The translations under genes and the position numbers were made by a program. The notes under the pieces were generated by a model. That model saw only the letters and a program-made list of their open reading frames with translations, was not told where the DNA came from and did not search any database. Positions 2,274 through 62,409 of a DNA stretch of 64,000 bases are shown here, one piece after another. The DNA lies in the IMG/VR virus record IMGVR_UViG_3300028592_000004, positions 165,211 through 229,210 of that record; one strand, 5' to 3'. The number at the start of each line of letters is the position of its first letter. Positions within the stretch are counted from its first letter, which is position 1.

Positions 2274-2515
2274 CAGAACCCTACGTCGGACAGCGTGGGT
2301 GCGTCACGGTGACGGATTTGCACTTCCGATCGGTTGAGGCCCAGGTTACCCAGTACCTGCTCGAACCGAGGATCTTCAAAGGTGTAGGCCTGGACCAGGC
2401 CGTCTGCGAGTTCGATCGCAACCGCCACGATGGTTCCCTGGCGGTTGCGAATCACGACGCGACGAGCTTCTGCGACCTGGGGCTCAGCCAGCTTTTGGAA
2501 AAACTCGATCTGCAT
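2273..2515 (-). CDS. Hypothetical protein (80 aa)
   Basis: TGATG stop/start coupling to the RNAP gene. Confidence 0.65.
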   Translation of the reverse strand: MQIEFFQKLAEPQVAEARRVVIRNRQGTIVAVAIELADGLVQAYTFEDPRFEQVLGNLGLNRSEVQIRHRDAPTLSDVGF

Positions 2516-3284: not shown

Positions 3285-3307
3285 CTCGGCTTCCTTGCCA
3301 GAAGTAA

Positions 3308-10994: not shown

Positions 10995-12150
10995 GCGGGA
11001 ACGTCGGTTCCAGCATCTTCGGCACGTTTGCCAAATGCACGCGGGCTTCGCGGCTGGTGACCGTGAAGCCGTCGATCGAAGTCGTGATGTTGATGAACTT
11101 CTTGACCGTGACCTTTGGCTTCGGGTCGAGGAAGCTCACCGAGAGCGTGTCGCCCTGCCGCCGAACGGAGATCCGGACCTCGGCATTCGACGTGGCCGTG
11201 ATCCCATCAGACAGCTGGATCGTCTGACCGCCCAGCAGGCTGAGCATCGTGCCGACGAAGTCCTTCTTGTTCATCGGGACCGGGTTGCCGGCCCGCGGCA
11301 CGGGCTTGTTGTTGGCCTTCGCCAGACTGACGGCCACAGCCTCCCAGACCCGGGCGTCTTCGGGAGGTGGCTCGGCCGTTGGAGGTGGCCCGGACATCGC
11401 TGCCGGCGGCGCCACCTTCCAACGGTTCTTGTTCAGCTCGTCGACCATCGCGACCCGCGACTTCCATTCGGTCTTGAACGCGTCCTTGGCGATCGCGCCA
11501 ATGACCGGCTCGCCGATCTGGGCTACCTGACCGTCCCGGAGCCGATACCAGAACGTGAACCGCGGCAGCCGGAAGTCGGGCTCGGAGGAACCGTGATCGA
11601 CTATTCGGATGTGGGCGGTGCCGTCCATTTGCTTTCCGGTCGTGTAGACCGGCGCAAGCGACGGGGCCGTCTGGGTGATCCAGCTCTTGCAGAAGCCACA
11701 CCAGTCCGCCGTGTCGATTTCGGCCCAGAACTCAAGTCCACTGGGAGCGTGGAGGCTTTCGATCTTGATTGCTTCTTCGGGGGCGTACTGGGGGACTCGC
11801 CGGTCTTCTTCGAACGTTCCTTGGATCGGAGGGTCTTCAACCGCAGCTTGCGGAGGCGGCGGAGGCTGGACCGCTGGACCTGCTTGCACGGCGGGACCAG
11901 GTCCCACCGAATGATTCGGCACTTGAGGGTAGCCAGCTGCTCCAGCGCGGCCAGTATCTGCTGTCGTTTGTGCGGCGTCATTGACCACCTCCCGAACGTC
12001 GACGAATTCCCCGTCCGTACGGGCCAGAGCGAAACGCGCTCGGGCCAGCGAGAGATCGGCGTAGGAGGGAGCCCAATTCGACTTGTAGGACAGGTCCAAG
12101 CCTGTGCACCCGCAGAACGCGAGGAGCACGAGCAACAGAAACTGGATCAT
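10981..12150 (-). CDS. Putative lipoprotein with thioredoxin-like WCGFC motif
   Basis: Start MIQFLLLVLLAFCGC (lipobox-like); TADWCGFCK. Confidence 0.65.
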   Translation of the reverse strand: MIQFLLLVLLAFCGCTGLDLSYKSNWAPSYADLSLARARFALARTDGEFVDVREVVNDAAQTTADTGRAGAAGYPQVPNHSVGPGPAVQAGPAVQPPPPPQAAVEDPPIQGTFEEDRRVPQYAPEEAIKIESLHAPSGLEFWAEIDTADWCGFCKSWITQTAPSLAPVYTTGKQMDGTAHIRIVDHGSSEPDFRLPRFTFWYRLRDGQVAQIGEPVIGAIAKDAFKTEWKSRVAMVDELNKNRWKVAPPAAMSGPPPTAEPPPEDARVWEAVAVSLAKANNKPVPRAGNPVPMNKKDFVGTMLSLLGGQTIQLSDGITATSNAEVRISVRRQGDTLSVSFLDPKPKVTVKKFINITTSIDGFTVTSREARVHLANVPKMLEPTFPLVGN

Positions 12151-13133
12151 GCGGCGAGACTCCATTTGAGGTGCTGCAGGGTGAAGCCCTTCGCGCCAGC
12201 ACCGGTGTACGAATCGTTCTGCTTGAGCATGCGATCGACGGTCGCAAAGTCGACCGCGAAGCATCCTTCAGGCAGCTCCACTTCCTCTCCGCTTTCGCAG
12301 AAGATCTTGTTCGGGCCGATCGGCTGATTGCCCCAAGACTGCTGACAGACGAAAGCAGGCCGGTTTCCGCGGGCCAGGAAGTAACCCCGGAAGTACATGC
12401 AGTGATTCCACGTCCCGTTCGCATAGTCGAAGCCGTCGCGGTCCCGGAAGTTCCGGAAGCCGACGTTCGAGCAGACGGGGATACCACGCCAGTTGCAGAT
12501 CGAGGCTCGCGCCTCCTCGGCTGAGCGAACCGGCGCGATGTAGGTGATCGGATGCTGCCGGGACTCTGTTTCCAGCTCCGCCGGAACACCGTTACGGCTC
12601 GTGCCCCAGGTCTGAGCGATGTTGTCGTCCGGCGTCCGCAGGTCGTACTGACCGTACTTCAGGCGGAAGACGACGCCCCACTGTCGGACCCACTCCGCCA
12701 TCCAGGCCCCGTAGGAGCCCTGGTTCCCGCCGAGCCGGCCTTTCCCGATCTCGATCCGAGAGCCGGCGTAGAGCGGTTCGGTGGCCACAGGGGCAACCCA
12801 GCGCTCCAGGGAGCCGAACATGATCTGGATCAGGAACAGGTCCTGAGCGAAGCGGCCCCAGCCCTGCGAAACGCAGGTCCCCAGGGTCTGCTTGAAGGCC
12901 CGGAGCATTCGCCCCAGGACCTTCAGCTCAGCTCGCCACAGGAAGGTGTCCGGAAACGAAGCCGCCGCCATCATGGCGGGTGCAGCCTCGCGGAGGGACG
13001 GGAACCAGTTTGTGGCAGCGGCAGCAGTACGCCTGACCTCGCTCTGGTTGTTGATCCAGCCGAGGTTATCCGCCGTAAAGCCACGTGGGAGGGCGCGTGT
13101 TTGCTCACGCTTACCTCGACTACGAGCAGACAT
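12147..13133 (-). CDS. Papain-like (C1) cysteine peptidase
   Basis: Q..GTCVSQG (Cys), WNHCM (His), QQSWG motifs; start moved to MSARSR. Confidence 0.75.
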   Translation of the reverse strand: MSARSRGKREQTRALPRGFTADNLGWINNQSEVRRTAAAATNWFPSLREAAPAMMAAASFPDTFLWRAELKVLGRMLRAFKQTLGTCVSQGWGRFAQDLFLIQIMFGSLERWVAPVATEPLYAGSRIEIGKGRLGGNQGSYGAWMAEWVRQWGVVFRLKYGQYDLRTPDDNIAQTWGTSRNGVPAELETESRQHPITYIAPVRSAEEARASICNWRGIPVCSNVGFRNFRDRDGFDYANGTWNHCMYFRGYFLARGNRPAFVCQQSWGNQPIGPNKIFCESGEEVELPEGCFAVDFATVDRMLKQNDSYTGAGAKGFTLQHLKWSLAA

Positions 13134-13146
13134 CCATGTCCTCCCG

Positions 13147-13623
13147 TTAGCCGGCAACGGCCTGACAGGCCGCAGCAAGCTGACGCAGTTTGAGAACGAA
13201 CGCAGCCCGGCCGGCGTCATCCAAATCGCCAACAGGGAGCGTACGGAGCCAGGCGTCGACGACGACTGGCAATTTGACGATCAGACCCGTCTTCAGTCCG
13301 ATCCGTTCGCGGGCAGTGGCCAGCGCGGAGAGCGCGGCGGCACCGGTCTGGATCGACTTATCCAGTTCGACCGCATCGGCCGCTGCCGTGTACAGCGAGC
13401 AATAGTCGCGGGCCTTAATCTGGTAGTCGGTGAATCCGCTGGTCTGGAAGGCATCGGCGACCTGGGCGTTGAGCGTCGGGTCCGCCGGCACAGCCGGATT
13501 GACGGGGTTCACCGGGTTGACCGGGTTGACGGGGTTCGGAACAGGCTGCGGACCGGGGACCGGCGGGGCACACCCCACCAGCATCCCGAGGAGCAGCGCA
13601 CTACCGAGCAGCTTTCGCGACAT
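13147..13623 (-). CDS. Putative lipoprotein with PVN repeats
   Basis: LLGMLVGC lipobox; (PVN)n linker. Confidence 0.75.
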   Translation of the reverse strand: MSRKLLGSALLLGMLVGCAPPVPGPQPVPNPVNPVNPVNPVNPAVPADPTLNAQVADAFQTSGFTDYQIKARDYCSLYTAAADAVELDKSIQTGAAALSALATARERIGLKTGLIVKLPVVVDAWLRTLPVGDLDDAGRAAFVLKLRQLAAACQAVAG

Positions 13624-13969
13624 TCGACCCCTCCTTGGGTTCGTCGGTCGTTTGGCCCAGGGTCGTCACGACCACCTGGGTCACGGCCTGCGCGAAGGCA
13701 GGCGTGGATTCGCCGGACAGCACCAGGTCAACCTTACGGTCGCCGACCTGGAAGCTGAGCTTCGACTGCGGAACGCCACTCGATCCGCGGAGAAAGAGCT
13801 CCCGCGAGCCAAGGGCGCCGGCGCCGAGAAGCCCGGCAACGATCTGGGCAATGCTGTACCCGGACGTGAGGGGCACACCAGCGTTGGCCGCAGCGGTGAG
13901 GCCGTACGTGGCCTGGGCGGTGAGAGCCGTTCCCACGAGCGTGAGAACAGGCGCGAGGAATTTGAGCAT
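13601..13969 (-). CDS. Small membrane protein
   Basis: Two hydrophobic segments; RBS GGAG. Confidence 0.65.
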   Translation of the reverse strand: MLKFLAPVLTLVGTALTAQATYGLTAAANAGVPLTSGYSIAQIVAGLLGAGALGSRELFLRGSSGVPQSKLSFQVGDRKVDLVLSGESTPAFAQAVTQVVVTTLGQTTDEPKEGSNVAKAAR

Positions 13970-14010
13970 GAGAGGCTCCGAGAACAGTCCGTTGTCGTCG
14001 GGTTGCTGGC

Positions 14011-14520
14011 TCAGACCGCCTGAGTCAGCTTGCCGCTACGGAAGAGGTTGATCAGCTCGATCACGAGCTGGACGGCGGTGAGAACCGTCGTCGGGTTGAA
14101 GAGAAGCGAGCGCGGCCGGGCTTCCGAGTCCGGAGCGTTCGGGTCGTTCTGCAGCTCCGCCTTGACGGCGTCGACCAGGCTCTCGACGTCAGCGGCGGAG
14201 ACCTGATGGTTGTCCGACCGGCGGCGGAATACGCCGTACACGACGGCCGCGGCGGCACTGACGAGCAGCGTCCGCTCCGCGACGAACTGGGCAAGCGGGC
14301 AAACCCGATCGTCCAGCGTCGTCTTGGTCATCGCCGTGAAGGGGCAGACGAGGTTCAGGGCGAGCTGAACCGCAACCTGCGTCCCTTCATAGGAGCTGAG
14401 GTCCGCGTTGAGCAGCGGAGCCCCGGCGCTGAGGAACGCCGGGAGCTGCGACAGGTCGAGGAAGTTCTGAAGAGTGCCGACAGACTTGATCTGTGCGAAG
14501 ACGTCCATGTTGGGTCTCAT
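14011..14520 (-). CDS. Hypothetical protein
   Basis: ORF in operon context. Confidence 0.6.
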   Translation of the reverse strand: MRPNMDVFAQIKSVGTLQNFLDLSQLPAFLSAGAPLLNADLSSYEGTQVAVQLALNLVCPFTAMTKTTLDDRVCPLAQFVAERTLLVSAAAAVVYGVFRRRSDNHQVSAADVESLVDAVKAELQNDPNAPDSEARPRSLLFNPTTVLTAVQLVIELINLFRSGKLTQAV

Positions 14521-30786: not shown

Positions 30787-30789
30787 CAG

Positions 30790-30860
30790 TTACCCCGCTG
30801 GGATTCGAACCCAGACTACCGGCACCAAAGACCGATGTGCTGCCGTTACACCACAGAGTA
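30790..30860 (-). tRNA. tRNA-Gln(TTG)
   Basis: Cloverleaf, loop CT-TTG-GT, T-loop GTTCGAATC. Confidence 0.88.
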
Positions 30861-31033
30861 AGCAAAAGACCCCGTCGCATGACAGGGTCTTTCGTGTCCC
30901 GGATCGCTATCGGAATGCCGAACGCACGCAACCAGATGGCCCTTTTGGGAACCACGAGCCGAAGCTCACAGAAGACTATTCGCTTTCCGGGCAATTCCAA
31001 CGGGATCCTAGCCGACAGTTGGGGGTTGAGCAA

Positions 31034-31104
31034 TACCGCGTATGGGATTCGAACCCACCTAAGCCGTTAGAAAGACGGCTGTCCTCCCCGAAGACGAACG
31101 CGGC
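31034..31104 (-). tRNA. tRNA-Glu(TTC)
   Basis: Stem GCCGT/ACGGC, loop CT-TTC-TA, T-loop GTTCGAATC. Confidence 0.8.
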
Positions 31105-31108
31105 ATAG

Positions 31109-31195
31109 CGGAAGTCGAGGGACTCGAACCCTCACACCCTTGCGGGCCGTCCAGGTAGCAACCGGCGCCGGCAAACCAGTGGCCGGATGACTTCC
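31109..31195 (-). tRNA. tRNA-Ser(GCT)
   Basis: Loop TT-GCT-AC, long variable arm, G73. Confidence 0.8.
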
Positions 31196-31198
31196 AAG

Positions 31199-31282
31199 CG
31201 GAAAGCCGAAGAATCGAACTCCACGCGTTTTACCGCGCCCCCGGTTTTCGAGACCAGTTTGCCTCCGTTGGCGGGACCTTCC
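31199..31282 (-). tRNA. tRNA-Ser(CGA)
   Basis: Loop CT-CGA-AA, long variable arm. Confidence 0.85.
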
Positions 31283-31287
31283 GTAAG

Positions 31288-31431
31288 TGACGATGCCAGG
31301 AATCGAACCTAGTGAGCAGGCCACATTGGCAGTACCTCCCGCCGCTCTGCATGCGAGCGGACAGTCCCTTCCACCGTTGGCTGATCTGCACTGGCCATAC
31401 ACCAGTCCCTCTGCCATTGAGGATCATCGTC
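31288..31431 (-). ncRNA. tRNA-like RNA (144 nt) with ~70-nt insertion in the variable region
   Basis: Acceptor GACGATG/CATCGTC, D arm CCTC/GAGG, stem ACTGG/CCAGT with loop TGTATGG, T arm CTAGG-TTCGATT-CCTGG. Confidence 0.65.
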
Positions 31432-31435
31432 AAAG

Positions 31436-31511
31436 TAGCAGCGACAGGGATCGAACCTGCATGCACACGGGTCTGAGCCGTGCCGCTCTGTCCAACATGG
31501 CGTACGCTGCC
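31436..31511 (-). tRNA. tRNA with CAG anticodon (Leu), short variable arm
   Basis: Stem CACGG/CCGTG, loop CT-CAG-AC, 5-nt variable loop. Confidence 0.78.
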
Positions 31512-31515
31512 GTCT

Positions 31516-31785
31516 TTATCGACTGGCATCACCAGTCGCTCGCCTGTGATTACGAATCTGCTGGTGCGGTGAGGACGGCTCAGGATAGGGAACACTCGCC
31601 GACCGCACCGTCCATCCCGCTTCCCAGTTGCCATCTTCGTCACGCAGGCGAATCATGCGGCCGACGATAGCGAACTTGGCGGGAATCCAACTCGTGGTTC
31701 GCTCTAATCCACGAGGGGTTAGTCGCTCCAGGAGGCATTGACAGTACAGGTCGCGAGAACGGGATGGAGTATGAGGTGCAAACAT
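31516..31785 (-). CDS. Hypothetical protein within the tRNA cluster
   Basis: 89-aa ORF with RBS AGGAG. Confidence 0.6.
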   Translation of the reverse strand: MFAPHTPSRSRDLYCQCLLERLTPRGLERTTSWIPAKFAIVGRMIRLRDEDGNWEAGWTVRSASVPYPEPSSPHQQIRNHRRATGDASR

Positions 31786-31798
31786 GATGGTCTCCTAG

Positions 31799-31881
31799 TA
31801 CCGAGAGCCGGAGTCGAACCGACAAGATCGCAATGATGGCGAGTCTACAGCTCGCGGGGCCTTCCAATGCCCAATCTCGGT
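31799..31881 (-). tRNA. tRNA-Tyr(GTA)
   Basis: Stem GCGAG/CTCGC, loop CT-GTA-GA, long variable arm. Confidence 0.85.
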
Positions 31882-31969
31882 GGGGCGGGCCACTTCACCT
31901 GATCCGAGTCCGGGAGTGGTGTCACAAGCACCTTCCCTTCTGTCAGGCCGTAGTACCCGTACGGACGTG

Positions 31970-32039
31970 AGACGCCGGTCAGTGTCGAGCTGACCTCACC
32001 ATCGTTTGCTGCGACGGGCCATCCCGGATGGACGGCGTC
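31970..32039 (-). tRNA. Degenerate tRNA-Cys(GCA)-like gene
   Basis: Acceptor GACGCCG/CGGCGTC+U73, loop CA-GCA-AA (A33), T-loop CTCGACA, tiny D loop. Confidence 0.55.
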
Positions 32040-32109
32040 TTGTGGCTGCGACGGGCGGTAAACCGCCACCGCGACGTCTACGCGGTGTCCAAACGTCGCA
32101 GCCTTTGAG

Positions 32110-32182
32110 CACAGCCCCAGGGAATCGAACCCTGCCAATCGAATTTGGAGTTCGACTCGCCAGCCTTGGATCATTGGGCCGT
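32110..32182 (-). tRNA. tRNA-Trp(CCA)
   Basis: Stem TCGAA/TTCGA, loop CT-CCA-AA; D arm weak. Confidence 0.75.
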
Positions 32183-32188
32183 GTGAGG

Positions 32189-32260
32189 CCGGAGCGACCG
32201 GAATCGAACCGGTGACCACCGGGTTTCAACCGATGACTCTACCAACTGAGTTACGCTCCG
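32189..32260 (-). tRNA. tRNA-Phe(GAA)
   Basis: Canonical D arm (CTCAGTTGGTAGAG), loop TT-GAA-AC. Confidence 0.9.
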
Positions 32261-36904: not shown

Positions 36905-38530
36905 CTACTTCACGAAGCTCGCCATCACGGCAGGAACGTCGGCCGACGCGCCGACGATGTCGAGCTGACCGGCATCCTTCGGGTCAGCGACCGAGAACCG
37001 CGTGGCCGTCAAAGCACACACGATGAGTTTGGCCGGACGGTTCATCTGCTCGCGGTACATCTGCAGGGCCTGGGAGGCGTGGATCTGCCCCGCCCAGCTC
37101 TCGTTGTCCGTGTAGATGACGAAGACGTCGACCTCGATCTTGTGGGCCAGAGCGTACAACATCGGCAGGGCGCAGTCGGTCCCACCGAAGTTGAGCTTCC
37201 GCATCTCAGCGATCGCTGTCGGAATCGTGTCCCGGACGCCAATCGCCAACGGCGTCACCGCCGCAGTGTCGTACCGGCCGTTACGACCCGCCGTGAAGGC
37301 AACGACATGCGTCTCCTCTTCCGTCCGGATCGGGATCAGAGCCAGAGCCGTCGCCGCCTCCGCCGCCGAGAGACCGGGCACGCTCGCGACGTGGCTACTG
37401 TGCATACTCCCGCTGACGTCGACGCCGAGCAGGTACTTCTTGTTCGTCGGCTCCAGGTACTGGAAGGCCTTGTAGAAGCCGTCGTCGAGGGCGGAGATGA
37501 TCCGTTGATCGACGTTCCAGGTCAGGGACCCCTTCACACCCTTACCGTTCGCGTAGACCTTCGAAGCGAGCAGAAGAGCGAACGGGTGGACCCGTTCCTT
37601 CTTCAGCCGATCCGGGTTGGTCAAGGCGTTCGTGACGAACCTGGTCGTGCTCGACAACGGCTTGATGAGGTCGATGGACGTCATCTTGCCGAGGTTTCGC
37701 ACCATCGCCGTCAGCCCCATGTGCGGCAGGAGGGCCTCCCACACCTTCGGCTCGTTGAGGTACTCGGTCGGGATCGCTTCCCGCGGCAGCTGGTACGTCT
37801 CGATCGCCTTGATGATCTCCTTGGCCGACGTCGCCGCCTTCGCAGCTTCGAAGCCCAGAATCGCGGGAGCCTCGCTGCCGGCACGGCCGTGGGCGATCCA
37901 GTCGAACACCTTGCCGTGCGGACTGTCGGAAGGCACCTTCGGCTTCGACAGCCGGAGGACGTCGCGATGGGACCACGCCTTGCCGCCTTCCGAGACGACT
38001 CGCGACTGATACTTGACGGCCTGATAGGCAGCCTGATCCGCCGGCCGGCTGAGATACCAATTCTGAATGGCACGCTTGAGGCCGCGACCCCAGCCCCGGA
38101 ACTGCTCGACGGCATCGACGAACTGGAACAGGTGATAGCCCGTCCGGCAGATGTCGTTCAACGCAGCGAGGGCCTGCTGACCGAGCTCTTCCTTCTGGCC
38201 GGCGAGGTACGCCAGGACGAAGACCGCCTGGTCGTTCTTCGGCGCCAGGGCTTCGAGGCTGATCCGGCGGGTCATTTCGAGGACACGCTTGGCGTCCTCC
38301 TGCACGCACTTGGCCAGGACGGCGATGCTGTCCTGCGTCATCTTCTGTTCGGTGACGTAGTACGATCCGCCCATCGTGCCGAGGATCAGGAAGCGTTCAA
38401 GCTGCTTCCAGTGATCAACGACGAACGAGAAGCCGCCAGCGTTGTTTTTCTCCATCGGCTTGCCGGGGATCGGCTGCGACTGCGGAGTCTGACGGGTGGA
38501 AGCCGAACGTGCGTAGCGTGACGCGTTCAT
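36905..38530 (-). CDS. rsr: Ro60-related TROVE + vWA domain RNA-binding protein
   Basis: NNAGG, RFLILG, GWGR, KYQSR, SHRDVLRL, DVSGSM (MIDAS), GGTDC, YTDNE. Confidence 0.95.
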   Translation of the reverse strand: MNASRYARSASTRQTPQSQPIPGKPMEKNNAGGFSFVVDHWKQLERFLILGTMGGSYYVTEQKMTQDSIAVLAKCVQEDAKRVLEMTRRISLEALAPKNDQAVFVLAYLAGQKEELGQQALAALNDICRTGYHLFQFVDAVEQFRGWGRGLKRAIQNWYLSRPADQAAYQAVKYQSRVVSEGGKAWSHRDVLRLSKPKVPSDSPHGKVFDWIAHGRAGSEAPAILGFEAAKAATSAKEIIKAIETYQLPREAIPTEYLNEPKVWEALLPHMGLTAMVRNLGKMTSIDLIKPLSSTTRFVTNALTNPDRLKKERVHPFALLLASKVYANGKGVKGSLTWNVDQRIISALDDGFYKAFQYLEPTNKKYLLGVDVSGSMHSSHVASVPGLSAAEAATALALIPIRTEEETHVVAFTAGRNGRYDTAAVTPLAIGVRDTIPTAIAEMRKLNFGGTDCALPMLYALAHKIEVDVFVIYTDNESWAGQIHASQALQMYREQMNRPAKLIVCALTATRFSVADPKDAGQLDIVGASADVPAVMASFVK

Positions 38531-51753: not shown

Positions 51754-52923
51754 TCAGTTGGTCGACGGGAGGTCGACCTGTTCTCCGTCGTTACGAGCGA
51801 TCAGCTTCGCGATGACGGCGCCGTCGGTGTTCTCGCTCAGGAACCGAACGGCTCCATCAGCGAAGACAGCCTGAGCACCACCCACATGGAAGCTGTAGAT
51901 CTCGTCGTTCGGGCCACAGTTGTTGGTCGTCCACGGGCAACCCGGGGTCGGGCTGGTCGGTCCACCGGTCGGACGATTGTTGTTGTTGATCAGACGATGC
52001 GTCGAACCAGCCTGAGCCGGCGGGCCGGACACACCACTGCCGTTGTCGGGATCAGCCCACCGATTCGGGCACCGGCTGGCCGAGCCCGATCCGGAAGCGT
52101 CCTTGCAGTTGTCCGTGGTCCCACCGTTAGCGGTGGAGGCCAGGTACTTGCTGCGGATCCCGCCGTTGGCAGTGAGGTACTGCTTGCCGGCGTCTTCCGC
52201 GATCGCGACCGTGTTGCTGGTTCCGTCCGTGATCAGACCCATCGCGGTGCCGCCCAGAGACAGAGCTCCATCGCGACGCGAGTTCCGATCCGTGGACGTC
52301 GCCGGATTCCGCCGGCCGAGGGCCACCGTCGTCGCCGAGGTCCCCGTCAGGTCCGTCGACGCGATCACGATGTCGGTGTAGACGGTCGGCATGTAGTCGG
52401 TCTGACCGTACCCCATCTCATCATCGACGTAGACACCGTTGCTCGGGCAGAGCAGGGCGGCGATCTTCGTCTTGGCGGCTTCCCGGTTCCGGTACTGCGG
52501 CGAGGTCGTGACCGTGCTGGCGGCGTTGTAGTGGTACTTCAGGTCCATCGTGTTGTACACGGGCGCCTGATCGAAGTACGGCAGCAGCGACGTGAACGTC
52601 GAATGCGGATCGAACGCCGTGTCGTGCTTCGTGCCCACCCACTGACCGTTGGTGAGGGTCAGCCCCTCGGTCGCCAGCCCGGACGCCTGCGTGGCCGTCC
52701 AGTTCGTTCCTTCCCCACCACTCGGGAACCGCTTGTAGGCGGACTCGTAGTTGTGGAGAGCCAGTCCCATCTGCTTCAAATTGTTCTTGCAGGTGCTGCG
52801 ACGAGCAGCCTCGCGCGCCTGCTGGACCGCTGGCAGCAGGATTGCCACCAGGACTGCGATGATCGCGATGACCACCAGCAGCTCAATCAACGTGAAACCC
52901 CGACGCAAAGAAGAACGTGCCAT
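51754..52923 (-). CDS. DUF1559 protein with prepilin-type N-terminal cleavage/methylation motif and H-X9-DG motif
   Basis: [51 protein letters not shown]; ITDGTSNT; [14 protein letters not shown]. Confidence 0.96.
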
Positions 52924-53037
52924 CGGAAAAACCCTTGGCCTGTCACTCACAGGCAGAGGCCGTCTGAGACGGCGGATGTGGAGCGAATGCTCCAAAACAA
53001 ATGCCAGGAGTATTGCACCCCTGGCACCTGTGACTTG

Positions 53038-54742: not shown

Positions 54743-54932
54743 GATGGTTCCTCGGGTGAAAGTTGCGGCTCCGCCACACGGCTGGAACCATTGAACCGTG
54801 CGAGTTTAGCCTTAACTCCTGCTATAACCCTGTGATCAAGATGGATGAACTAGCGGGAGCGACTGTCTGTAAGCATGGCCCTTCTGCTGACCTTCCTGCC
54901 GGCGCACCAGTTTCCTACAGGATGTAACGCTC

Positions 54933-55077
54933 GCCAGGGCTGTGGGTGCATTGCCCGGAATCCTGGCCACTTACTCAGCGTTCCACGGGTGGTCCTGAGC
55001 GGCTAGCGCTTCAGGCCTCATCCGTGCTCGCCCCTGGCAGCGGGGCTAGAAACAGAGGTTGATTGTCAGAGCCTCTG
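54933..55077. ncRNA. Structured repeat copy A (putative TnpB/Cas12f-type guide RNA scaffold)
   Basis: Homologous to copies B-D, with compensatory stem changes. Confidence 0.75.
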
Positions 55078-55183
55078 CTCTTGGACTGTTCGGGCTTGAG
55101 TCGAAAATGGCTCGTGCCTGACTGCGACGTACAGCGGCCTGCGCAGCGGAGGAGCGTTTCTGCGTTAATCTGGCCAGCAGGGA

Positions 55184-55253
55184 CCACAACATCAGGATCG
55201 AGACGTGGTGCTAAAGGTCCTCACGTTCTACCGCCACAACATCAGGATCTAGA
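55184..55253. repeat. Direct repeat CCACAACATCAGGATC(G/T)AGA x2, period 50 bp
   Basis: 55184-55203 and 55234-55253, 19/20 identical. Confidence 0.8.
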
Positions 55254-55263
55254 TCCAAACATT

Positions 55264-55408
55264 GCCGGGGCTGTGGACACATTGTCCTGAATCCCGGCCA
55301 CTTACGCAGCGTTCCGCGAGCGGTTCCGAGCGGCGAGCGCATTCAGACCTTACTCGCGCTTGGCCCCGGTGATGGGCCTAGACATCGGGGTTGAAAGTCA
55401 GAGCCCCT
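55264..55408. ncRNA. Structured repeat copy B (putative guide RNA scaffold)
   Basis: As copy A; abuts the stop codon of 55407-55727. Confidence 0.75.
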
Positions 55409-55727
55409 ATTCGGATGCAGCAGCGACTGCCGACTTCTTGGCCTTGTGGCGGATCGCCTGGGTGACCTGGCGCTCCGTCGTGACGATGGCGTGCTTGTGG
55501 CTGGTTCGCATGGCGTCCCAGCGGCCGGCACTGATCCCGACGACAATCGCGTTCGGGTTCTGCTTCTGAACTCGCACGAGCTGCTGCTCAGCGAACTCAG
55601 CATTGCAGAAGATCAGCATCCGCCCCTTCGGATCAACGAAGGGGACCGGCTGCGGATCTGATGGAGTGAAGATGGCCCACCGGATCGAATGCGACCGGTG
55701 GCGAAGAGCGGGTTCAAACTTGGCCAT
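55407..55727 (-). CDS. Hypothetical protein; resembles 61101-61475
   Basis: SIRW...VPFVDPKGRMLI...VGISAGRW vs SIRW...IPFRDAEGKIVV...IGMGAHKW. Confidence 0.7.
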   Translation of the reverse strand: MAKFEPALRHRSHSIRWAIFTPSDPQPVPFVDPKGRMLIFCNAEFAEQQLVRVQKQNPNAIVVGISAGRWDAMRTSHKHAIVTTERQVTQAIRHKAKKSAVAAASE

Positions 55728-55770
55728 GAACTGATCCTTCAGAGGATGGAGTGAACGGAACGCAGCATCG

Positions 55771-56313
55771 TCACTCGGACGGGGCTTGTCCAGGCTCCTC
55801 GTTAGGGAGGTTCGCCTTCACCGCCGCCGCCAGGTTGTCGTAAACGTGGGCAATCCCCTCCGGCGACACGGACGAGAGCAGCACAACACGCTCGCTCATC
55901 CGGACTTCGTCTTCAGGCATGCCGGTCTGATCTTCAGCGTGCGGCAGGAGGAAGAGGATGTACTCCATATCGTCCGGCAGAATCGCCTTGAACGATTCCT
56001 CAACCACGGACGCCCAGTCGTCGCGAGTCTTGGCATCCAACTCGTTCAGGAGCGCCGGCTGACCGTCGTGGCGATAGTGCAGGTGACGTAGATACAGGCC
56101 AGCGTAGTAGATCGACATCAGCCGCGGTGGCAAGCTGCTCACAGTCATCCCGTGGAGCAGCGTCTCGCCAGTGTGCTTCTCGCCCGGTCCCGGCCGCACG
56201 CCGAAATTGAACGAGAAGTCGGTATCGGGCGGGAGCAGGTCAACAACCGCAAGCCGGATCTTTTCACCGAGCTCGCGCTGCTCCTCAGCCGACAGGTCTT
56301 TGAACGATTTCAC
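55771..56313 (-). CDS. Hypothetical protein with internal duplication
   Basis: Two similar halves (..LLPPDTDF..SSLPP / ..ILPDDMEY..SSVSP). Confidence 0.65.
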   Translation of the reverse strand: MKSFKDLSAEEQRELGEKIRLAVVDLLPPDTDFSFNFGVRPGPGEKHTGETLLHGMTVSSLPPRLMSIYYAGLYLRHLHYRHDGQPALLNELDAKTRDDWASVVEESFKAILPDDMEYILFLLPHAEDQTGMPEDEVRMSERVVLLSSVSPEGIAHVYDNLAAAVKANLPNEEPGQAPSE

Positions 56314-56585
56314 AACAAGCCTTTCGTTTTCAGGCGTTCAACGATGAAGGCCTCGCAGTCCTCTCGGGTCGCAGGGCCGAAGATGGATTTACCGAACCAA
56401 GCAGCAGCCTGCTGATCCGACTTAGCAAGCGGATGGGCTGAGCCCCGTTCGACAACGATCGTGCGTCGCGGACTAACGCCGACGACTAGAAGATGGTGTT
56501 TGTTGGCCAGCGCTTCGAGGCGCCGCATCTGCTCCTGGATCTCGGCAATCCGAGCAGACTCAGATGGGGTAAACTCCCGAGCCAT
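56310..56585 (-). CDS. Hypothetical protein
   Basis: Start moved to MAREF (RBS AAGGAG). Confidence 0.6.
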   Translation of the reverse strand: MAREFTPSESARIAEIQEQMRRLEALANKHHLLVVGVSPRRTIVVERGSAHPLAKSDQQAAAWFGKSIFGPATREDCEAFIVERLKTKGLL

Positions 56586-56619
56586 AGACTCCTTTCCGGA
56601 TTCAATACCCGCGGATTGC

Positions 56620-56847
56620 TTATCGAGGAATGATGAAGCCGATCGCAAACCCAAAAAGGAATGCAAACGCCATAAGGCCGTACTCAGACGTATCGGACGT
56701 GATCGGTTTCGGAACAGGCTTGCCCTCATCGCAGAAGGCGCACCACCAATGCTCTGCAGCCAAGTAGTGCGGAGTCGGTTCGATCTGGCAGCCGCAAGGC
56801 TTCCGGACCCACTCAATCGTTGGGGCGTCGATTGTCGTCGCGTCCAT
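56620..56847 (-). CDS. Small Cys-containing protein with C-terminal TM helix
   Basis: Start moved to MDATT (RBS GGAG). Confidence 0.5.
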   Translation of the reverse strand: MDATTIDAPTIEWVRKPCGCQIEPTPHYLAAEHWWCAFCDEGKPVPKPITSDTSEYGLMAFAFLFGFAIGFIIPR

Positions 56848-57097
56848 GCTTAGCTCCGTAGATTGCATCGTGTAATCGGATCGACAGGTACATGGCGGAT
56901 GATGCCCCGCAACCAGCCGAGAACCCGAGGGTCCAGTCGCCCTTGACCACGAGAAAGACCAGGGCGACATCCAGGAACGCCATCAGGAAGGCCGTGACAA
57001 TGACCAGGCGCATGTGTCCGCCGATGACGTTCTTGTACTGGAATCCTTTAAGGAATACAGCCACAAACGACATGACGAACGAAACGAGGTAGATCAC
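56813..57097 (-). CDS. Small membrane protein
   Basis: Three TM helices. Confidence 0.65.
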   Translation of the reverse strand: MIYLVSFVMSFVAVFLKGFQYKNVIGGHMRLVIVTAFLMAFLDVALVFLVVKGDWTLGFSAGCGASSAMYLSIRLHDAIYGAKHGRDDNRRPND

Positions 57098-57705
57098 TTC
57101 CCTTCCAGAAACTTGACCGTGTTCACCAGCACCTGGGCGAGCTGTCGTGAGATCCGGAACCGCGGCGTGTTGATGAGGATGCTGCGGAGGATGTTGCCGT
57201 TGCGATGACGCTCGCTGCTCGCCTTCCAGTCGAGGGTCATCTCCAGGATGGCCGGCAGGTTCATCTCGTTGATCGGAGAGACGTCGTTTGCCGCCTCCTC
57301 TTGGAGCCGAGCGACCAGCCGCTCCTTGACAGCCTGCGGGATATCCGTCGACCGCTCCAGCGCAGAAATATCGGAGAGCATCTCCGGATCGGGCGTACCT
57401 TCCCGGTAATGCTCGGGATGATGGTCGTTGCGGCCGTAGTGGTGATCCAGTGCTGGCTTGAGAGCCGCAAGGAACTCCTTGTACTGCGGGTCCCCGAATG
57501 TCACGCCGTCAAGCAACGGCGTGTAGACAGCGAAGAACTCCGCTTCGGGAGACTGCAACTTGGAGAGGTCATGCCTCGATGCGCGAAGGAGAAGCTCCGT
57601 CGCCATGACGCCGAGAAGGTCACGAACCCGCGAGATGTGCGCCTGGGTCTGGACTTTCGACTCCGCCAGCGCGAGCGGGGTCACTTCCGGAAGTTGACTC
57701 GTCAA
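57094..57705 (-). CDS. DUF5662-like (HD-related) protein
   Basis: HDLSKL, HHYGRNDHHPEHY, EMTLDWKA motifs. Confidence 0.8.
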   Translation of the reverse strand: MTSQLPEVTPLALAESKVQTQAHISRVRDLLGVMATELLLRASRHDLSKLQSPEAEFFAVYTPLLDGVTFGDPQYKEFLAALKPALDHHYGRNDHHPEHYREGTPDPEMLSDISALERSTDIPQAVKERLVARLQEEAANDVSPINEMNLPAILEMTLDWKASSERHRNGNILRSILINTPRFRISRQLAQVLVNTVKFLEGK

Positions 57706-58402
57706 CGAATACTCCTTGAGGTTTCAGCCGACTGATCGCACAGATGGCGTCAGCGGCCAAGACGATATCCGACAGCAAAGCGCTGTCAAAGATAATGCGA
57801 ACCGCAGGGACTTCCTGTCCGTTGCGAGGCGGCAAGGACGTTGCTCTCACCTCCAGAACAGGCAGCCACCGGAACTCGCGTGAGTGAAGCCACAGGAACT
57901 TGTCCCCGACGACCACCTGAGCAGCCGCTGCCTCGTAGATGTCTCGGCCGGGTGCCAACCCACGCTCGTACACCAGACTTGCCAAACCGTCGAGGTTGGG
58001 CACCAGCGAGGCCAGAGACTGATTCGTGCGAATGAGCTTGTCCTCCGTGCGTCGAAGGTCGTTTTGAAGCTCATAGACCAGTCCTTCGACCGCCCCACTG
58101 ACCGTATCGTCATAGGCGTCGAACTTGACGTGATCGACAGAAATCACTGCCCGCACCATTCCCGAAGGAGTGGTCTGGACGCGAATGAAGTTGATGGGCT
58201 GGAGTCCATCGTATTCGCGTGTCTCAACCCAGAACGCTTCAGCGTGAAAGAACCCTTCGAACTCTCCAGTTTGCAGCTTTACGGCCGTCTCAATGGACTT
58301 CTCGTCGAGCTGCGGTACGGCCCGAGCAAGCTCGCGGCGAAATTCGAGAGCGAGGTCGTTAGCTTCGAGCGCTGACTTGGGCAGTTTGATCTCGTCGGTC
58401 AT
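57620..58402 (-). CDS. Hypothetical protein
   Basis: 260-aa ORF, ATGA overlap. Confidence 0.65.
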   Translation of the reverse strand: MTDEIKLPKSALEANDLALEFRRELARAVPQLDEKSIETAVKLQTGEFEGFFHAEAFWVETREYDGLQPINFIRVQTTPSGMVRAVISVDHVKFDAYDDTVSGAVEGLVYELQNDLRRTEDKLIRTNQSLASLVPNLDGLASLVYERGLAPGRDIYEAAAAQVVVGDKFLWLHSREFRWLPVLEVRATSLPPRNGQEVPAVRIIFDSALLSDIVLAADAICAISRLKPQGVFVDESTSGSDPARAGGVESPDPGAHLAGS

Positions 58403-58788
58403 GGTTGGCGACTGAGCCTTTCAAAGAGGAGATCCATCTCCAGCAGGTTCTCCGGTGCCAGTTCATCCGGCACGAAGTTCCAGCGGACATGGGTGTCAAA
58501 GAAGATCACCTCGATCCGCCGGCCATATCGGGAAAGGAGGTACGTCGGTGGGCCGTTGTTGGTGGCGTCCTCAAAGCCCTCCTGGAGGAGAACCGCGGGC
58601 GTGAGTTTGACCAGGCGCCGTTCTTCCATCGCCACAAGATGGCCGGCGAGCGTCATGAGGTCACGACGCTTCTGGCTGATGTTGACGTGCGGCACGGGGC
58701 CGACGTCAGATCGGTAGGGATCCAAACCCTGGCGGCTGTCCAGCTGCCGCTTGAGTGCTTCAACGAATGCCGTTCCACGAACGATCAT
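58399..58788 (-). CDS. Hypothetical protein
   Basis: Start moved to MIVRG. Confidence 0.6.
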   Translation of the reverse strand: MIVRGTAFVEALKRQLDSRQGLDPYRSDVGPVPHVNISQKRRDLMTLAGHLVAMEERRLVKLTPAVLLQEGFEDATNNGPPTYLLSRYGRRIEVIFFDTHVRWNFVPDELAPENLLEMDLLFERLSRQP

Positions 58789-58930
58789 TCCAGTCCTGTC
58801 CTTCCTGTTGAGGCTTCTTAACCCAAGCCTGATGCTCGTACGTGTCTGCAAGGACAACGAGCACAAAGGCAAACGTGATGAATACGATCATGGCCGCGAG
58901 CACCATGAGCATTTGAATGAGAATGTCCAT
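58760..58930 (-). CDS. Small membrane protein
   Basis: RBS AGGAG before MDILIQ; one TM helix. Confidence 0.55.
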   Translation of the reverse strand: MDILIQMLMVLAAMIVFITFAFVLVVLADTYEHQAWVKKPQQEGQDWNDRSWNGIR

Positions 58931-59169
58931 AGTGCGTCGACTCCCTGATATCTGCGGATGAGACGGCCACCTCTCGTAACTGCGGGATTCTTCACCGGCA
59001 TTGTCCTGCGGGGTGCCGGCAGCTGCCTGCATGCGCCATGCTCTGCTTTCGTGAACGATGGTCCTGCACAGAACCTAGAGCCGAGACCTGCATCCATTGG
59101 GCTGAGCTGCCTCGTGCGTGTGAACCTGCCCTCCATAGCAACCTGCCGAAAGGCCTCCTAGCGAACGTC

Positions 59170-59311
59170 TCGGGGCTGTGGACACGTTGTCCTGAATCCC
59201 GACCTTTCACAGCGTTCCGCGAGTGTCTCCAGGCGGCTAGCGCTCTGGATCTGATTCGCGCTTCGCCCTTGCAGCGGGCGTAGACACAGGGGTTGATAAT
59301 CAGTGCCCCTG
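59170..59311. ncRNA. Structured repeat copy C (putative guide RNA scaffold)
   Basis: As copy A. Confidence 0.75.
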
Positions 59312-59692
59312 CTCTGGGAATTGTTCAACGTAATCTCACGTTCAGGACGTGGCACATTGTCTGCAATACGGACAGCAGACGCTGCCTAACCGGATTGTGC
59401 TGCCTTGATCCTGCGACATTCCCCGTAGACCTGCTGACGTACGGACTTCTTTCTGTCATGACACGATCGTCTGACGTGATACTGCGTCCGAGCGGAACAT
59501 CACTCGCCGTGTCGGTGCTGTTGCGTCCCTGAGGTCATTGCAGTGCGCCAGTGCCGGAAGCTGCGTCCGAACCCTAACGAGGTGTACTCGAACGTCCGAA
59601 TCTTGCCGCAATGGTATCCTGTCGCTCCTTGCAAAGCCGACACACTTCTCCAGGGACTTGCAGTCGAGTTTCAGGCGGGTGCACCGGACGTT

Positions 59693-59835
59693 TCGGGGCT
59701 GTGAGCACATTGCTCGGAATCCCGATCTCTTTCTCAGCGTTCCGCGGTCGAACCGGGGCGGCTAGCGCTCCCGGTCGACACCGCGCTTGGCCCTGGCAAT
59801 GGGCCTGATCCAAGGAGTTGAAGGTCATTGCTCCT
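59693..59835. ncRNA. Structured repeat copy D (putative guide RNA scaffold), overlapping the stop codon of the TnpB-like gene
   Basis: As copy A; occupies the position typical of a TnpB omega-RNA. Confidence 0.8.
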
Positions 59836-61126
59836 GGCTCGTCTCGCCTTCGTCGGAGGACTCTTCCTCCTTCTCCGGCGGCGTCTTGGCACGAACCACG
59901 ATCCGCTTCGCACGAGCCTTCTGTTCGATCATGGTGCCAAGCATGGCCCACGGGAACGAGGGTGCGAAGGAGTGGTCCGTATCGTCATAAACGATCTCCG
60001 CCACTTTACGGCGGGCTGCGTAGGCAACAAGTGAGGCACTCACCTGGTGGCACAGCGTCTGGAGCCGGTTCCGGTCACGCCGGGCCTTCTCCTGAACGTG
60101 AGCTTGGAACGGCTTTCCGTCCCGCCGCGGTTTCCGATACTCGGCCTTGCGGTCGTCGCTCAGTCGAGACAACTCCCGCAGGTGGGCCGCGTGCCGGTTC
60201 GAAATCATCCGGGCGTTATCGGCGTTGTAGTTCCAGATCCGCTGATCGTCCATGTCTACGCAGACCAGGAGCGAATCCTTGTCTGAGCGAACCATCAGCG
60301 TGTTGTCGGGAATGGACTCTCCCTTGATGGGGAGCCACCCGACGATCTTCGCCATCAACCGCCGGCTCGACCGGTTCCCGTTTCCGTTCTCTCGGTCCTT
60401 GTTCGCCGGCCGGTGATCGCCGGGCTTGCCTTCGATTTCCAGCAGCGCCGCCTGGCCCAGGAGCTCGGGATGCTCCATCAGCCATTCGATCGCCTTCGTC
60501 TGCCGCTTGAACTGCCGGCCGGCAGAGAGCATCAGCTCGTGCCGCACTCCGCCGACATTGGCGATCAGGAAGATCCGCTCGTCCTTGCGTTCCAGCTTGA
60601 ACCCGTCCGGCCGAATGGGAACCGGCTGCGGAAAGCGGAAGCTCGGCGGCGCAATCGCGTTTCGCCAGATCATGTCATATCGCAATTTGCGATAGCGCTG
60701 CTCGACTGACATCAGAACCGCCGAAGCGGTTCCCTTGCCGATCGTCTGCCACGATGCCAGCTCTGGTCCCATCCCGTACAGGTAGATCGGCGGCATCTTC
60801 GGCAGTTTCTCCTCGCCGGGACCGCGGACAACGTCGTTCGCCAGCAGCTTCCGGATCGCCCAGTTGCTGAGGTGAGTCACTGCCTCCTGTGCCTGCCGCA
60901 GGATCGGGCGAAAGACCTCCCAGTCCGCCGAGGCGATCGGGATCGTCATCGCGCGGATCGCGTAGGTCTTGCCCCAGCACTCCGAGCAGGTGAGCGTACT
61001 CCCAACGTTCTTCCAACCCCGCGGCGGGCGAGGCTTCCCTTTCACGGTCGGCTTGACGTTGCGCAAGGCGCCGCAGACCGAGCAAGCAATTTCGACAGTT
61101 TCAGTTGACGTTGTCGCCGTCTCCAT
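59825..61126 (-). CDS. Nuclease-dead TnpB/Cas12f-like RNA-guided protein with N-terminal zinc finger
   Basis: CSVC..CSEC; PSFRFPQPVPI; basic bridge helix ending RNRLQTLCHQVSASLVAYA; IVYDD (RuvC-II-like); FPWAMLGTMIEQKA; RuvC-I Asp position degenerate (LMVRSD); no C-terminal Zn ribbon or RuvC-III. Confidence 0.75.
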   Translation of the reverse strand: METATTSTETVEIACSVCGALRNVKPTVKGKPRPPRGWKNVGSTLTCSECWGKTYAIRAMTIPIASADWEVFRPILRQAQEAVTHLSNWAIRKLLANDVVRGPGEEKLPKMPPIYLYGMGPELASWQTIGKGTASAVLMSVEQRYRKLRYDMIWRNAIAPPSFRFPQPVPIRPDGFKLERKDERIFLIANVGGVRHELMLSAGRQFKRQTKAIEWLMEHPELLGQAALLEIEGKPGDHRPANKDRENGNGNRSSRRLMAKIVGWLPIKGESIPDNTLMVRSDKDSLLVCVDMDDQRIWNYNADNARMISNRHAAHLRELSRLSDDRKAEYRKPRRDGKPFQAHVQEKARRDRNRLQTLCHQVSASLVAYAARRKVAEIVYDDTDHSFAPSFPWAMLGTMIEQKARAKRIVVRAKTPPEKEEESSDEGETSQEQ

Positions 61127-61475
61127 TGAGCCCTCCGAAGGTAGTGAGTAGAAGTGCCTGTACCTTTGCCTTCATCTTCTCGATGATCGCGAGCCACTCG
61201 GCCTCAGTCTCGATCTCAACGTGCGGCATCTCCGACTGGAAGAGACGCCACTTATGTGCGCCCATGCCGATTCGAGCAACACCGCGATCGGCGCCAGCTT
61301 TCTGTGCGTCTTCATCGAGCCGCTGCAATATGGTGTCCGCAAGTGCCAGCGACTTCGGGACCACGATCTTCCCTTCCGCGTCGCGGAAGGGAATTTCATA
61401 ACCGCCAAGGTAACTAAGCATAAAGAACCAACGAATCGATGGCACCCCGGTTACATTGACCCTGATAGGTTCCAT
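61101..61475 (-). CDS. Hypothetical protein; resembles 55407-55727
   Basis: RBS GAGGA; overlaps the start of the TnpB-like gene. Confidence 0.7.
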   Translation of the reverse strand: MEPIRVNVTGVPSIRWFFMLSYLGGYEIPFRDAEGKIVVPKSLALADTILQRLDEDAQKAGADRGVARIGMGAHKWRLFQSEMPHVEIETEAEWLAIIEKMKAKVQALLLTTFGGLNGDGDNVN

Positions 61476-61484
61476 GACGTCCTC

Positions 61485-61518
61485 AAAAGAAAAGAGACGG
61501 CAGGAAAGTCCTGCCGTC
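61485..61518 (-). terminator. Intrinsic terminator
   Basis: GACGGCAGGA/TCCTGCCGTC stem plus TCTTTTCTTTT on the minus strand. Confidence 0.75.
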
Positions 61519-61527
61519 CCGGGATAG

Positions 61528-62305: not shown

Positions 62306-62335
62306 TGTGAGGTCCTCCTTCTGAAATGAACCCTG

Positions 62336-62409
62336 TGTCGGGGGCGGGATTCGAACCCGCAACCAACGGATTTGAAGTCCGGTGCTCTAACCATTTGAGC
62401 CACCCCGAC
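62336..62409 (-). tRNA. tRNA with UCA anticodon (opal suppressor; not tRNA-Sec)
   Basis: Acceptor GTCGGGG/CCCCGAC+A73, D arm GCTC/GAGC, loop CT-TCA-AA, short variable loop, T arm GCGGG-TTCGAAT-CCCGC. Confidence 0.9.

Follow-up and report, generated by a model that had tools for sequence, protein, structure and literature searches.

The recognition that nuclease-dead derivatives of TnpB and Cas12f serve as natural RNA-guided transcription factors is recent. The two types that have been studied experimentally, TldR and dCas12f–sigma-E, both come from bacterial genomes or prophages. Here we describe a locus for a Cas12f-like protein in a soil jumbo phage that is represented by a 229.2-kb assembly in three samples. 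The stretch analysed (the window) is the last 64,000 bases of the 229,210-bp IMG/VR contig IMGVR_UViG_3300028592_000004. It holds the gene for a 433-aa Cas12f-like protein and four copies of a structured RNA element, the scaffold, of which a fifth copy lies elsewhere in the same genome. We favour, at a probability of about 0.62, the view that a catalytically dead, truncated Cas12f-type protein is here combined with five guide-RNA genes to form a non-cutting RNA-guided DNA binder that modulates transcription.

TldR proteins are TnpB-derived repressors guided by omega-RNAs, mostly with one guide (10.1101/2023.11.30.569447; PMC13622181). The dCas12f–sigma-E systems, represented by structures 9n9c and 9n9m, employ single guide RNAs with 14–16-nt guides at the 3′ end, some genomes having several, and they switch on transcription by way of sigma-E (Hoffmann/Wiegand et al., 'Exapted CRISPR-Cas12f homologs drive RNA-guided transcription', PMC13472631). 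The same paper describes, on bioinformatic grounds and in one sentence and a figure, a distinct non-sigma-E cluster of dead Cas12f proteins near CRISPR arrays, with covarying putative guide RNAs (gRNAs) and a resistance–nodulation–division (RND) efflux target (PMC13472631, Extended Data Fig. 1a,b). A survey of soil huge phages reports Cas12f/TnpB-like proteins without nearby arrays (PMC11748809). The family described here is probably the CRISPR-associated cluster or its close kin, to which it is likened by architecture and description, not by sequences.

The protein and its linked RNA element

59825–61126, minus strand: gene for the 433-aa nuclease-dead Cas12f-like protein (family profile, AlphaFold/Foldseek, PADLOC)

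Compared singly with Pfam, PHROGs, NCBIfam and the PDB (phmmer), the protein yields nothing useful; the informative comparisons are those of a family profile, of PADLOC and of structure. In the PDB the family profile matches Cas12f1 (9i8y, E 1e-10) and Cas12f (9nzq, 2e-9), followed by nuclease-deactivated Cas12f (9n9c, 1e-5) and TnpB/AsCas12f entries (about 1e-4), and the PADLOC Cas12f model recognises the single sequence with an E value of 1.8e-11. The AlphaFold model (predicted local distance difference test, pLDDT, 87) gives a best Foldseek match of E 2.7e-16 over about 400 columns. The top 60+ matches are all Cas12f, dCas12f, TnpB or larger Cas12 proteins, with Cas12f at 1e-16 versus TnpB at 1e-10; in the viral structure library BFVD the matches are TnpB-like 'transposases'. 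The Cas12f/TnpB fold proposed in the initial annotation is thus borne out by profile, by PADLOC and by Foldseek on the predicted structure.

The protein consists of an N-terminal four-Cys zinc ribbon, a WED/REC region and a RuvC domain that is cut off after the RuvC-II strand and one helix–strand unit. Profile alignments span WED/REC and RuvC-II. They stop at residue 373 of the 500 in SpCas12f1 (9i8y), and the alignment to the 365-aa dCas12f of 9n9c reaches its very C terminus; therefore the protein has neither the TNB zinc finger nor RuvC-III, a lack that it shares with published dCas12f. The chain ends about 20 residues past the last RuvC strand, only a disordered acidic tail lies beyond residue ~413, and homologues end at the same point in the family alignment. 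In the model, the position of the RuvC-I Asp appears to be taken by Arg279; across the family this column holds R, S, K, H, E, A or M and is non-acidic in most members. The complete RuvC D-E-D triad of active nucleases is not present. The alignment ends, and the register taken from the model, uphold the earlier proposal that RuvC-III, the C-terminal zinc finger and the RuvC-I Asp are missing.

The family comprises full-length proteins of about 380–450 aa (28 aligned), in which the N-terminal CxxC...CxxC zinc ribbon is nearly invariant. A profile search returned 1,369 family representatives (clusters at 50% identity), 715 of them at E<1e-30 and nearly all of these 380–450 aa long.

The scaffold is present in five copies. 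Scores are from covariance models; R1 was built on copies A–D, and R2 is a model of the 3′ half that includes a repeat module described below.

54933–55084, minus strand: scaffold copy A (172.7 bits; the R2 3′ model aligns with the repeat hairpin deleted)
55264–55416, minus strand: scaffold copy B (172 bits; full-length on R2, including the repeat hairpin, 60 bits)
59170–59318, minus strand: scaffold copy C (174.5 bits; on R2, UUCGG 17 nt after the pseudoknot stem)
59693–59843 (model match 59685–59843), minus strand: scaffold copy D (175.7 bits; begins about 18 nt before the gene's stop codon)
Outside the window, L181 379–538, at about 31.8 kb on the phage contig: scaffold copy E (same phage; about 36 kb away around the genome)

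Repeat search and alignment confirm copies A–D as homologous elements of about 150 nt, with a mean column identity of 76%, where the initial annotation had placed them; the stem variants that it quoted and all four of its 16-nt flanks are present in the sequence. It had also placed copy D across the stop codon, and the gene indeed ends at 59825, within the model match. A scan of the window with R1 found no copy beyond these four. A variant-specific pattern, searched in IMG/VR, finds exactly five copies in the 229,210-bp phage genome and none in other viral contigs.

On the minus strand, RNAalifold folds copies A–D into 42 pairs, which make up three 5′ stems and a 3′ hairpin, and 19 of these pairs show compensatory changes. 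When 35 copies from 24 loci are aligned, 94% of cells pair, versus 33–45% with the partners slid by 1–3 columns; double changes occur in 41 of the 42 pairs, and the observed values were not attained in any of 500 shuffles, in an alignment that was itself fitted to the covariance model and is biased in favour of structure to that extent. The proposed pseudoknot GCTG/CAGC is corroborated by independent covariation: its third pair is T-A in 12 copies, G-C in 12, A-T in 3 and C-G in 2, and all four positions pair in 28 of 30 copies. G-U pairs (22) exceed A-C mismatches (5), and the scaffold RNA therefore runs in the sense of the gene, on the minus strand. All genes in this part of the window are on that strand, and each of the five copies lies between genes and runs in the same sense as the genes that flank it. 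No Rfam family matches the elements. No promoter motif shared upstream of the copies was found, nor were sigma-70-like promoters or terminators adjoining them.

The five copies are about 25% diverged, and every stem is kept through compensatory changes; therefore they are not recent transposition products. An IS200/IS605 transposon was rejected as their source on this divergence and on the lack of any transposase Pfam match in the neighbours.

Gene and scaffold are consistently linked. In 23 of 23 independent loci examined, the gene is followed immediately, on its own strand, by the scaffold: 4 from metagenomes, 3 close relatives, 11 from metagenome-assembled genomes (MAGs) and 5 from a search of IMG/VR that was blind to the gene. 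The linkage is seen in four distant metagenome loci (L001, L003, L004 and L005), and in the close relatives (L009, L010 and L011) the scaffold starts about 18 nt before the gene stop, as does copy D. The MAG loci come from Bryobacteraceae and other Acidobacteriota, Planctomycetaceae, Pirellulales, Saprospiraceae and bins labelled Saccharibacteria. The gene-blind DNA pattern matched 120 stretches in IMG/VR, of which six are true scaffolds by covariance model; a family gene adjoins five of the six, and the remaining one is copy E. The other matches, mostly a conserved 61-nt stretch of gut phages, have no covariance-model match and were set aside as unrelated. That 61-nt stretch, a chance match to the first pattern, occurs in many viral contigs of about 20–40 kb (L064–L183) of sample 3300045988. 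Among the loci examined, a scaffold was never found without a family gene in the same genome, so that the covariance-model scan sustains the expected co-occurrence of gene and element.

Across 22 loci there is no conserved neighbour protein (no sigma factor, helix-turn-helix (HTH) protein or cas1/cas2), and the Pfam lists of the fetched loci contain no cas1/cas2. Since no partner gene is conserved, the module consists of the protein and the RNA. Its carriers among the relatives are phages, plasmid-like elements, and conjugative and integrative elements. For the subclade of the window's protein, no relative was found in a cellular genome and IMG/VR holds only this phage itself; no homologues were found in GenBank phages or PLSDB plasmids.

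Duplication of whole scaffolds, as initially proposed, is borne out by the five copies in this phage and recurs in L003, with eight copies, and L186, with two. The eight copies of L003, a 112-kb phage-like contig, occupy about 3 kb (11495–14438, plus strand) at a spacing of about 300 nt downstream of the family gene. Three of the eight have the pseudoknot hairpin or full 3′ part; five keep the three 5′ stems only and then diverge.

CRISPR ancestry and presumed guide segments

In the relatives, the pseudoknot stem is followed by a 7-bp covarying hairpin and a YNCGG(G) motif, and this module recurs with a periodicity of about 72 nt. Nine loci contain arrays of 2–8 repeats of about 36 nt, separated by unique spacers of about 35 nt, and the 3′ arm of the last scaffold stem forms the start of the first repeat in these arrays. 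The fusion of 36-nt-repeat arrays to the scaffold means that the system is derived from CRISPR and that its RNA is a natural single-guide RNA (sgRNA): the scaffold is a tracr-like RNA that runs directly, as a natural fusion, into the first CRISPR repeat, and a mini-array follows. The likeness to omega-RNAs drawn in the initial annotation must be corrected accordingly, the family being nearer to Cas12f than to TnpB.

In the phage itself, this arrangement is best preserved after copy B. The remaining flanks in the window are listed with it.

55234–55263, minus strand: repeat-derived hairpin and GUGG(CGG) motif fused to copy B (R2 alignment)
55204–55233, minus strand: spacer of copy B, 30 nt, the best-delimited candidate guide (between the repeat module and the partial repeat)
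55184–55203, minus strand: partial (3′-half) repeat closing the copy B array (19/20 identical to the end of the first repeat module)
54873–54932, minus strand: variable 3′ flank of copy A, guide presumed within (R2 alignment with the hairpin deleted)
59110–59169, minus strand: variable 3′ flank of copy C (shortened repeat-derived segment, UUCGG, then presumed guide)
59633–59692, minus strand: variable 3′ flank of copy D, guide presumed within (differs from the flanks of all other copies)

The module fused to copy B is the counterpart of the first CRISPR repeat in the array-bearing relatives, and its 3′ 20 nt recur 50 nt downstream. The partial repeat has the same layout in L010. Two of the close relatives, L010 (2202–2300) and L011 (3261–3450), show the sequence of scaffold, repeat hairpin, one spacer and partial repeat seen in copy B; the spacer is about 29 nt in L010, and the corresponding interval in L011 is about 120 nt. 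The earlier statement that neither a transposase nor a CRISPR array lies nearby therefore stands for the transposase, with no Pfam match, and not for the array, of which a one-spacer vestige remains (55263–55184).

On R2, copy E keeps GCGGG 24 nt after the stem, and copies A and D both align with the hairpin deleted. Where repeat-derived sequence follows the pseudoknot, the guides must start about 20–35 nt further 3′. The 16-nt segments directly after the pseudoknot, at first taken as guides, are thus repeat-derived in B and probably in C and E; those of A and D are not so reassigned.

Two relatives bear on how guides change. L139 (2810–2853) and L076 (1492–1533) are phage contigs that are 99.5% identical and carry a four-repeat array; they differ almost only in the first spacer, of which the first 6 nt are common to both. 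Comparison of the two sequences offers evidence of guide replacement without visible cas1/cas2. A third relative, L086, is a 56-kb phage contig with a six-spacer array (regions 2300–4420 and 833–1597, minus strand). Its spacer 1 matches, in inverted orientation, 34 of 34 nt (39 of 39 with the repeat end) of a site upstream of its own gene, about 36 nt upstream of a TTGACC-17-TTTAAA promoter-like element of that dead-Cas12f gene. Spacer 6 agrees at 25 of 26 positions with the coding strand of a gene for an HTH_20-domain protein that lies 1.1 kb downstream. Such self-matches would be tolerable only for an effector that does not cut, and they support non-cutting regulation. The other 41 of 43 spacers have no match within a few kb around their own locus.

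The 16-nt flanks of A–D, compared with the window and the loci, give only three-mismatch matches at chance level, and the corresponding 16-mers (A–C from the first base, D from the third) find in IMG/VR their own guide locus and scattered chance matches. A 14-nt match of the copy A flank in L246 does not extend. A guide match of L003, 16 nt with one mismatch, falls inside a gene and is within chance expectation. The scaffold region, including the five units, is identical across the three independently assembled samples.

The closest likeness is to the CRISPR-associated dead Cas12f cluster. The two share C-terminal truncation and a covarying gRNA between gene and array, the latter in nine relatives here; both include Bacteroidota MAG members (here L184, Saprospiraceae); and both are associated with RND efflux, since in two relatives here the family gene follows an AcrB-type pump gene. 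These are Bryobacteraceae MAG loci (L188, 2884–6015, and L189, 1237–5274), in which the family gene comes directly after an AcrB/AcrD/AcrF-type RND pump gene and, in L188, overlaps its end. The first guide regions of the two are alike (about 14 of 20 nt by eye); a local target was not found. Unlike that cluster, the phage has its array reduced to one vestigial unit plus five dispersed scaffold–guide units, and its carrier is a 229-kb jumbo phage, with most relatives here on mobile elements.

With dCas12f–sigma-E the family shares a dead Cas12f fold cut off after RuvC-II and a single guide RNA with scaffold and 3′ guide and no separate tracrRNA (trans-activating CRISPR RNA). Several full gRNA genes per genome are a further common feature, and some of the dCas12f–sigma-E guides autoregulate the locus. 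In contrast, there is no rpoE or HTH partner here, the profile match to 9n9c (1e-5) is weaker than that to active Cas12f (1e-10), the family has an N-terminal four-Cys zinc ribbon, and its carriers and taxa are soil phages, plasmid-like elements, Acidobacteriota and Planctomycetota. Type V-F Cas12f (Cas14) provides the best sequence and structure matches (9i8y, 8j12 and 9nzq) and agrees in size (about 420 aa), in repeats of 36–37 nt and in a guide placed 3′ of the repeat. Those enzymes, however, are active nucleases with a full RuvC and TNB zinc finger, usually linked to cas1/cas2/cas4, and they use tracrRNA:crRNA (CRISPR RNA) pairs or an engineered sgRNA, whereas in the present family the first repeat and the tracr-like part form a natural fusion. 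TldR proteins resemble the family in a deteriorated RuvC site, in C-terminal truncation and in the position of the gRNA gene, which adjoins or overlaps the protein gene at its 3′ end; some are phage-borne, and they repress by blocking RNA polymerase (RNAP). The family here differs in ranking with Cas12f, in the arrays of its relatives and in its multiple guide units. Membership of the TldR group, which would imply descent from TnpB with an omega-RNA and without CRISPR repeats, was rejected because Cas12f outranks TnpB (1e-10 versus about 1e-4) and relatives carry arrays.

Mechanism and alternatives

In the mechanism that we propose, each RNA would serve as a natural single-guide RNA composed of three 5′ stems and a pseudoknotted hairpin, a CRISPR-repeat remnant and a unique guide segment. 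Complexes of protein and RNA would bind complementary double-stranded DNA without cutting it, and such binding would obstruct transcription, or alter it in some other way, at as many as five distinct sites. An ancestral layout of gene, fused scaffold and mini-array would have given rise to duplicated whole scaffold–guide units, now in two intergenic clusters and at one distant site, and the units would be co-transcribed with phage operons or embedded between them. We infer that the phage transcribes these RNAs and that the protein binds them, that guide function resides in their variable 3′ segments, and that the net effect is control of transcription.

Several observations weigh against this reading. 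The guide is best delimited for copy B, provisionally so for C and E, and presumed to lie within the flank for A and D. Within the complete 229-kb contig, the 16-mers from the flanks of A–D occur exactly once each, and so do the first 16 nt of the copy B spacer, the end that is expected to be TAM-proximal (TAM, target-adjacent motif). Matches of 18-mers from that spacer in metagenomes stop at 18–21 nt and are at chance level; the 130 nt downstream of each copy have no significant match in about 116 kb (about 51%) of the phage genome; and no TAM is derivable for the five guides. Local self-targets are seen in one relative only (L086, 2 of 43 spacers). On the side of the protein, the RuvC-I assignment follows secondary-structure register rather than a residue-level structural alignment, and the RuvC-II position is a conserved Asp (YDD), which might allow some residual chemistry such as RNA processing.

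The null matches imply targets that lie outside the phage, in the remaining half of its genome, or that are imperfectly matched. Probably the targets are outside the phage genome, in the host chromosome or competing elements, or are matched imperfectly. The initial annotation had suggested that the guides control host genes or that the system works with the phage RNAP; neither idea gained ground, as no target, TAM or link to the RNAP emerged. A more specific version of the regulatory reading, which we advance tentatively, is that a virulent jumbo phage possesses a stand-alone five-guide system to rewire transcription of host genes or rival elements, possibly with the phage RNAP, and that this system is reprogrammed by duplication of sgRNA genes and replacement of their 3′ segments, not by spacer acquisition.

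An alternative is that the system provides interference by binding only, directed against rival phages and plasmids or host defence genes, and is immune-like rather than a fixed circuit. Cas12m and Cas12c offer a precedent, as do the arrays of huge phages: both proteins silence without cutting DNA, are larger, and use an intact RuvC for RNA processing, and phage-borne compact type V effectors often lack acquisition genes. To our knowledge, dispersed whole-sgRNA genes have not been described for Cas12m or Cas12c. The presence of relatives on phages, plasmid-like and conjugative elements, their arrays of 2–8 unique spacers, the turnover of the first spacer in two near-identical phages, and the lack of a match of the phage's guides in its own genome, as far as tested, would all suit such a role. 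However, no spacer match beyond chance was found in about 190 unrelated viral loci, no cas1/cas2 was seen that could acquire spacers, the only identified targets are self-targets in regulatory positions, and the five units of the phage do not differ among three samples assembled independently. We regard interference as rather unlikely.

The effect on transcription could also be activation, not repression, if the complex recruited a polymerase or a sigma-like factor, possibly the phage RNAP, as dCas12f does with sigma-E. The truncation falls at the same structural point as in dCas12f 9n9c, the phage encodes its own RNAP, and the perfect self-target of L086 lies upstream of the −35 element and not over the promoter, a position typical of activators. 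Against this, neither a sigma factor nor any other partner gene is conserved in the 22 loci, the ORFs (open reading frames) that flank the gene have no sigma, HTH or transposase Pfam matches, and the family is nearer to active Cas12f than to the sigma-E clade. Activation is accordingly judged improbable.

There is little likelihood that the elements are instead cis-acting RNA structures (5′ untranslated region, processing or antitermination), with the protein controlling neighbouring genes at the RNA level without DNA targeting. The intergenic position of all five copies in the sense of their flanking genes, and the fact that no DNA target was found, are what such an arrangement would predict. 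Yet the same scaffold is joined in relatives to repeat–spacer arrays with spacers that match DNA elsewhere, the fold is that of an RNA-guided DNA binder, and copy D stands at the 3′ end of the gene, as do cognate guide RNAs of TnpB/Cas12f-type systems. It is most improbable that the locus is what remains of a CRISPR-Cas12f or TnpB element that has lost its function and is decaying, for although the nuclease site is lost, the array after copy B is vestigial and 5 of 8 copies in L003 lack the 3′ hairpin, the five phage copies keep their stems by compensatory changes at about 25% divergence and the family, with 715 representatives at E<1e-30, is large, consists of full-length proteins and has kept its conserved motifs.

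The phage setting and its significance

Upstream of the Cas12f-like gene, two further features can be listed.

61494–61520, minus strand: terminator-like hairpin upstream of the operon (12-bp stem with 8 G-C pairs, T-run)
61101–61475, minus strand: 124-aa ORF overlapping the start of the Cas12f-like gene (no Pfam/PHROG match)

To judge from the sequence, this strong hairpin probably marks the start of a transcription unit comprising the 124-aa ORF, the Cas12f-like gene and scaffold copies D and C. The 124-aa ORF is not conserved beside the family gene in the other loci (22 compared).

About 1.2 kb upstream of the Cas12f-like gene, which ends in TGA, there is a 75-nt tRNA with the anticodon UCA (62335–62409, minus strand). 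ARAGORN labels it SeC, yet it has normal length and scores 73.9 bits with the Rfam tRNA model; it could be an opal (UGA) suppressor. Read-through of the TGA stop was considered and rejected: by eye, the extension would reach a TAG after about 20 codons and would leave RuvC-III missing.

The window carries hallmarks of jumbo phages, namely multisubunit RNAP genes in fused and split form, genes for an SNF2 helicase and a Ro60/TROVE protein, and a cluster of seven tRNAs, and its gene content confirms the initial view of the host element as a jumbo phage with its own multisubunit RNAP. The RNAP genes (360–2273 and 3311–7768, minus strand) have an unusual arrangement: a 1,486-aa ORF joins parts of beta (Rpb2 domain 6) and of the N-terminal region of beta-prime (Rpb1 domains 1–2), and a separate 638-aa ORF carries Rpb1 domain 5. 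The tRNA cluster (30789–32260, minus strand) comprises genes for Gln, Glu, Ser, Leu, Tyr, Trp and Phe. The Ro60/TROVE protein, which has a vWA (von Willebrand factor A) domain, is encoded at 36908–38530 on the minus strand (Pfam E 1e-56 and 8e-38); the usual partners of Ro60 are Y RNAs. A gene at 51754–52995 (minus strand) combines an N-terminal methylation (pseudopilin-type) motif with DUF1559/SBP_bac_10. The DUF1559/N-methyl family is greatly expanded in Planctomycetes, and the gene hints at this phylum as the host.

What is new here is the jumbo-phage carrier, the replacement of the array by five dispersed whole guide genes, and a large family, mostly borne on mobile elements, with one relative that has a perfect self-match of an autoregulatory type. 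Beside TldR and dCas12f–sigma-E, the family forms a third, CRISPR-array-linked branch of more than 700 clusters at 50% identity, found largely on phages, plasmid-like and integrative elements and needing no partner gene. A protein of about 420 aa with a natural sgRNA of about 150–180 nt is of interest for tool building. L086 is a clear autoregulatory example, and the phage is a testable case of possible RNA-guided programming of host or self transcription. Should the five-guide rewiring of transcription prove true, the phage would provide the first phage-encoded multi-guide RNA-guided regulator and an example of CRISPR arrays dissolving into dispersed guide genes.

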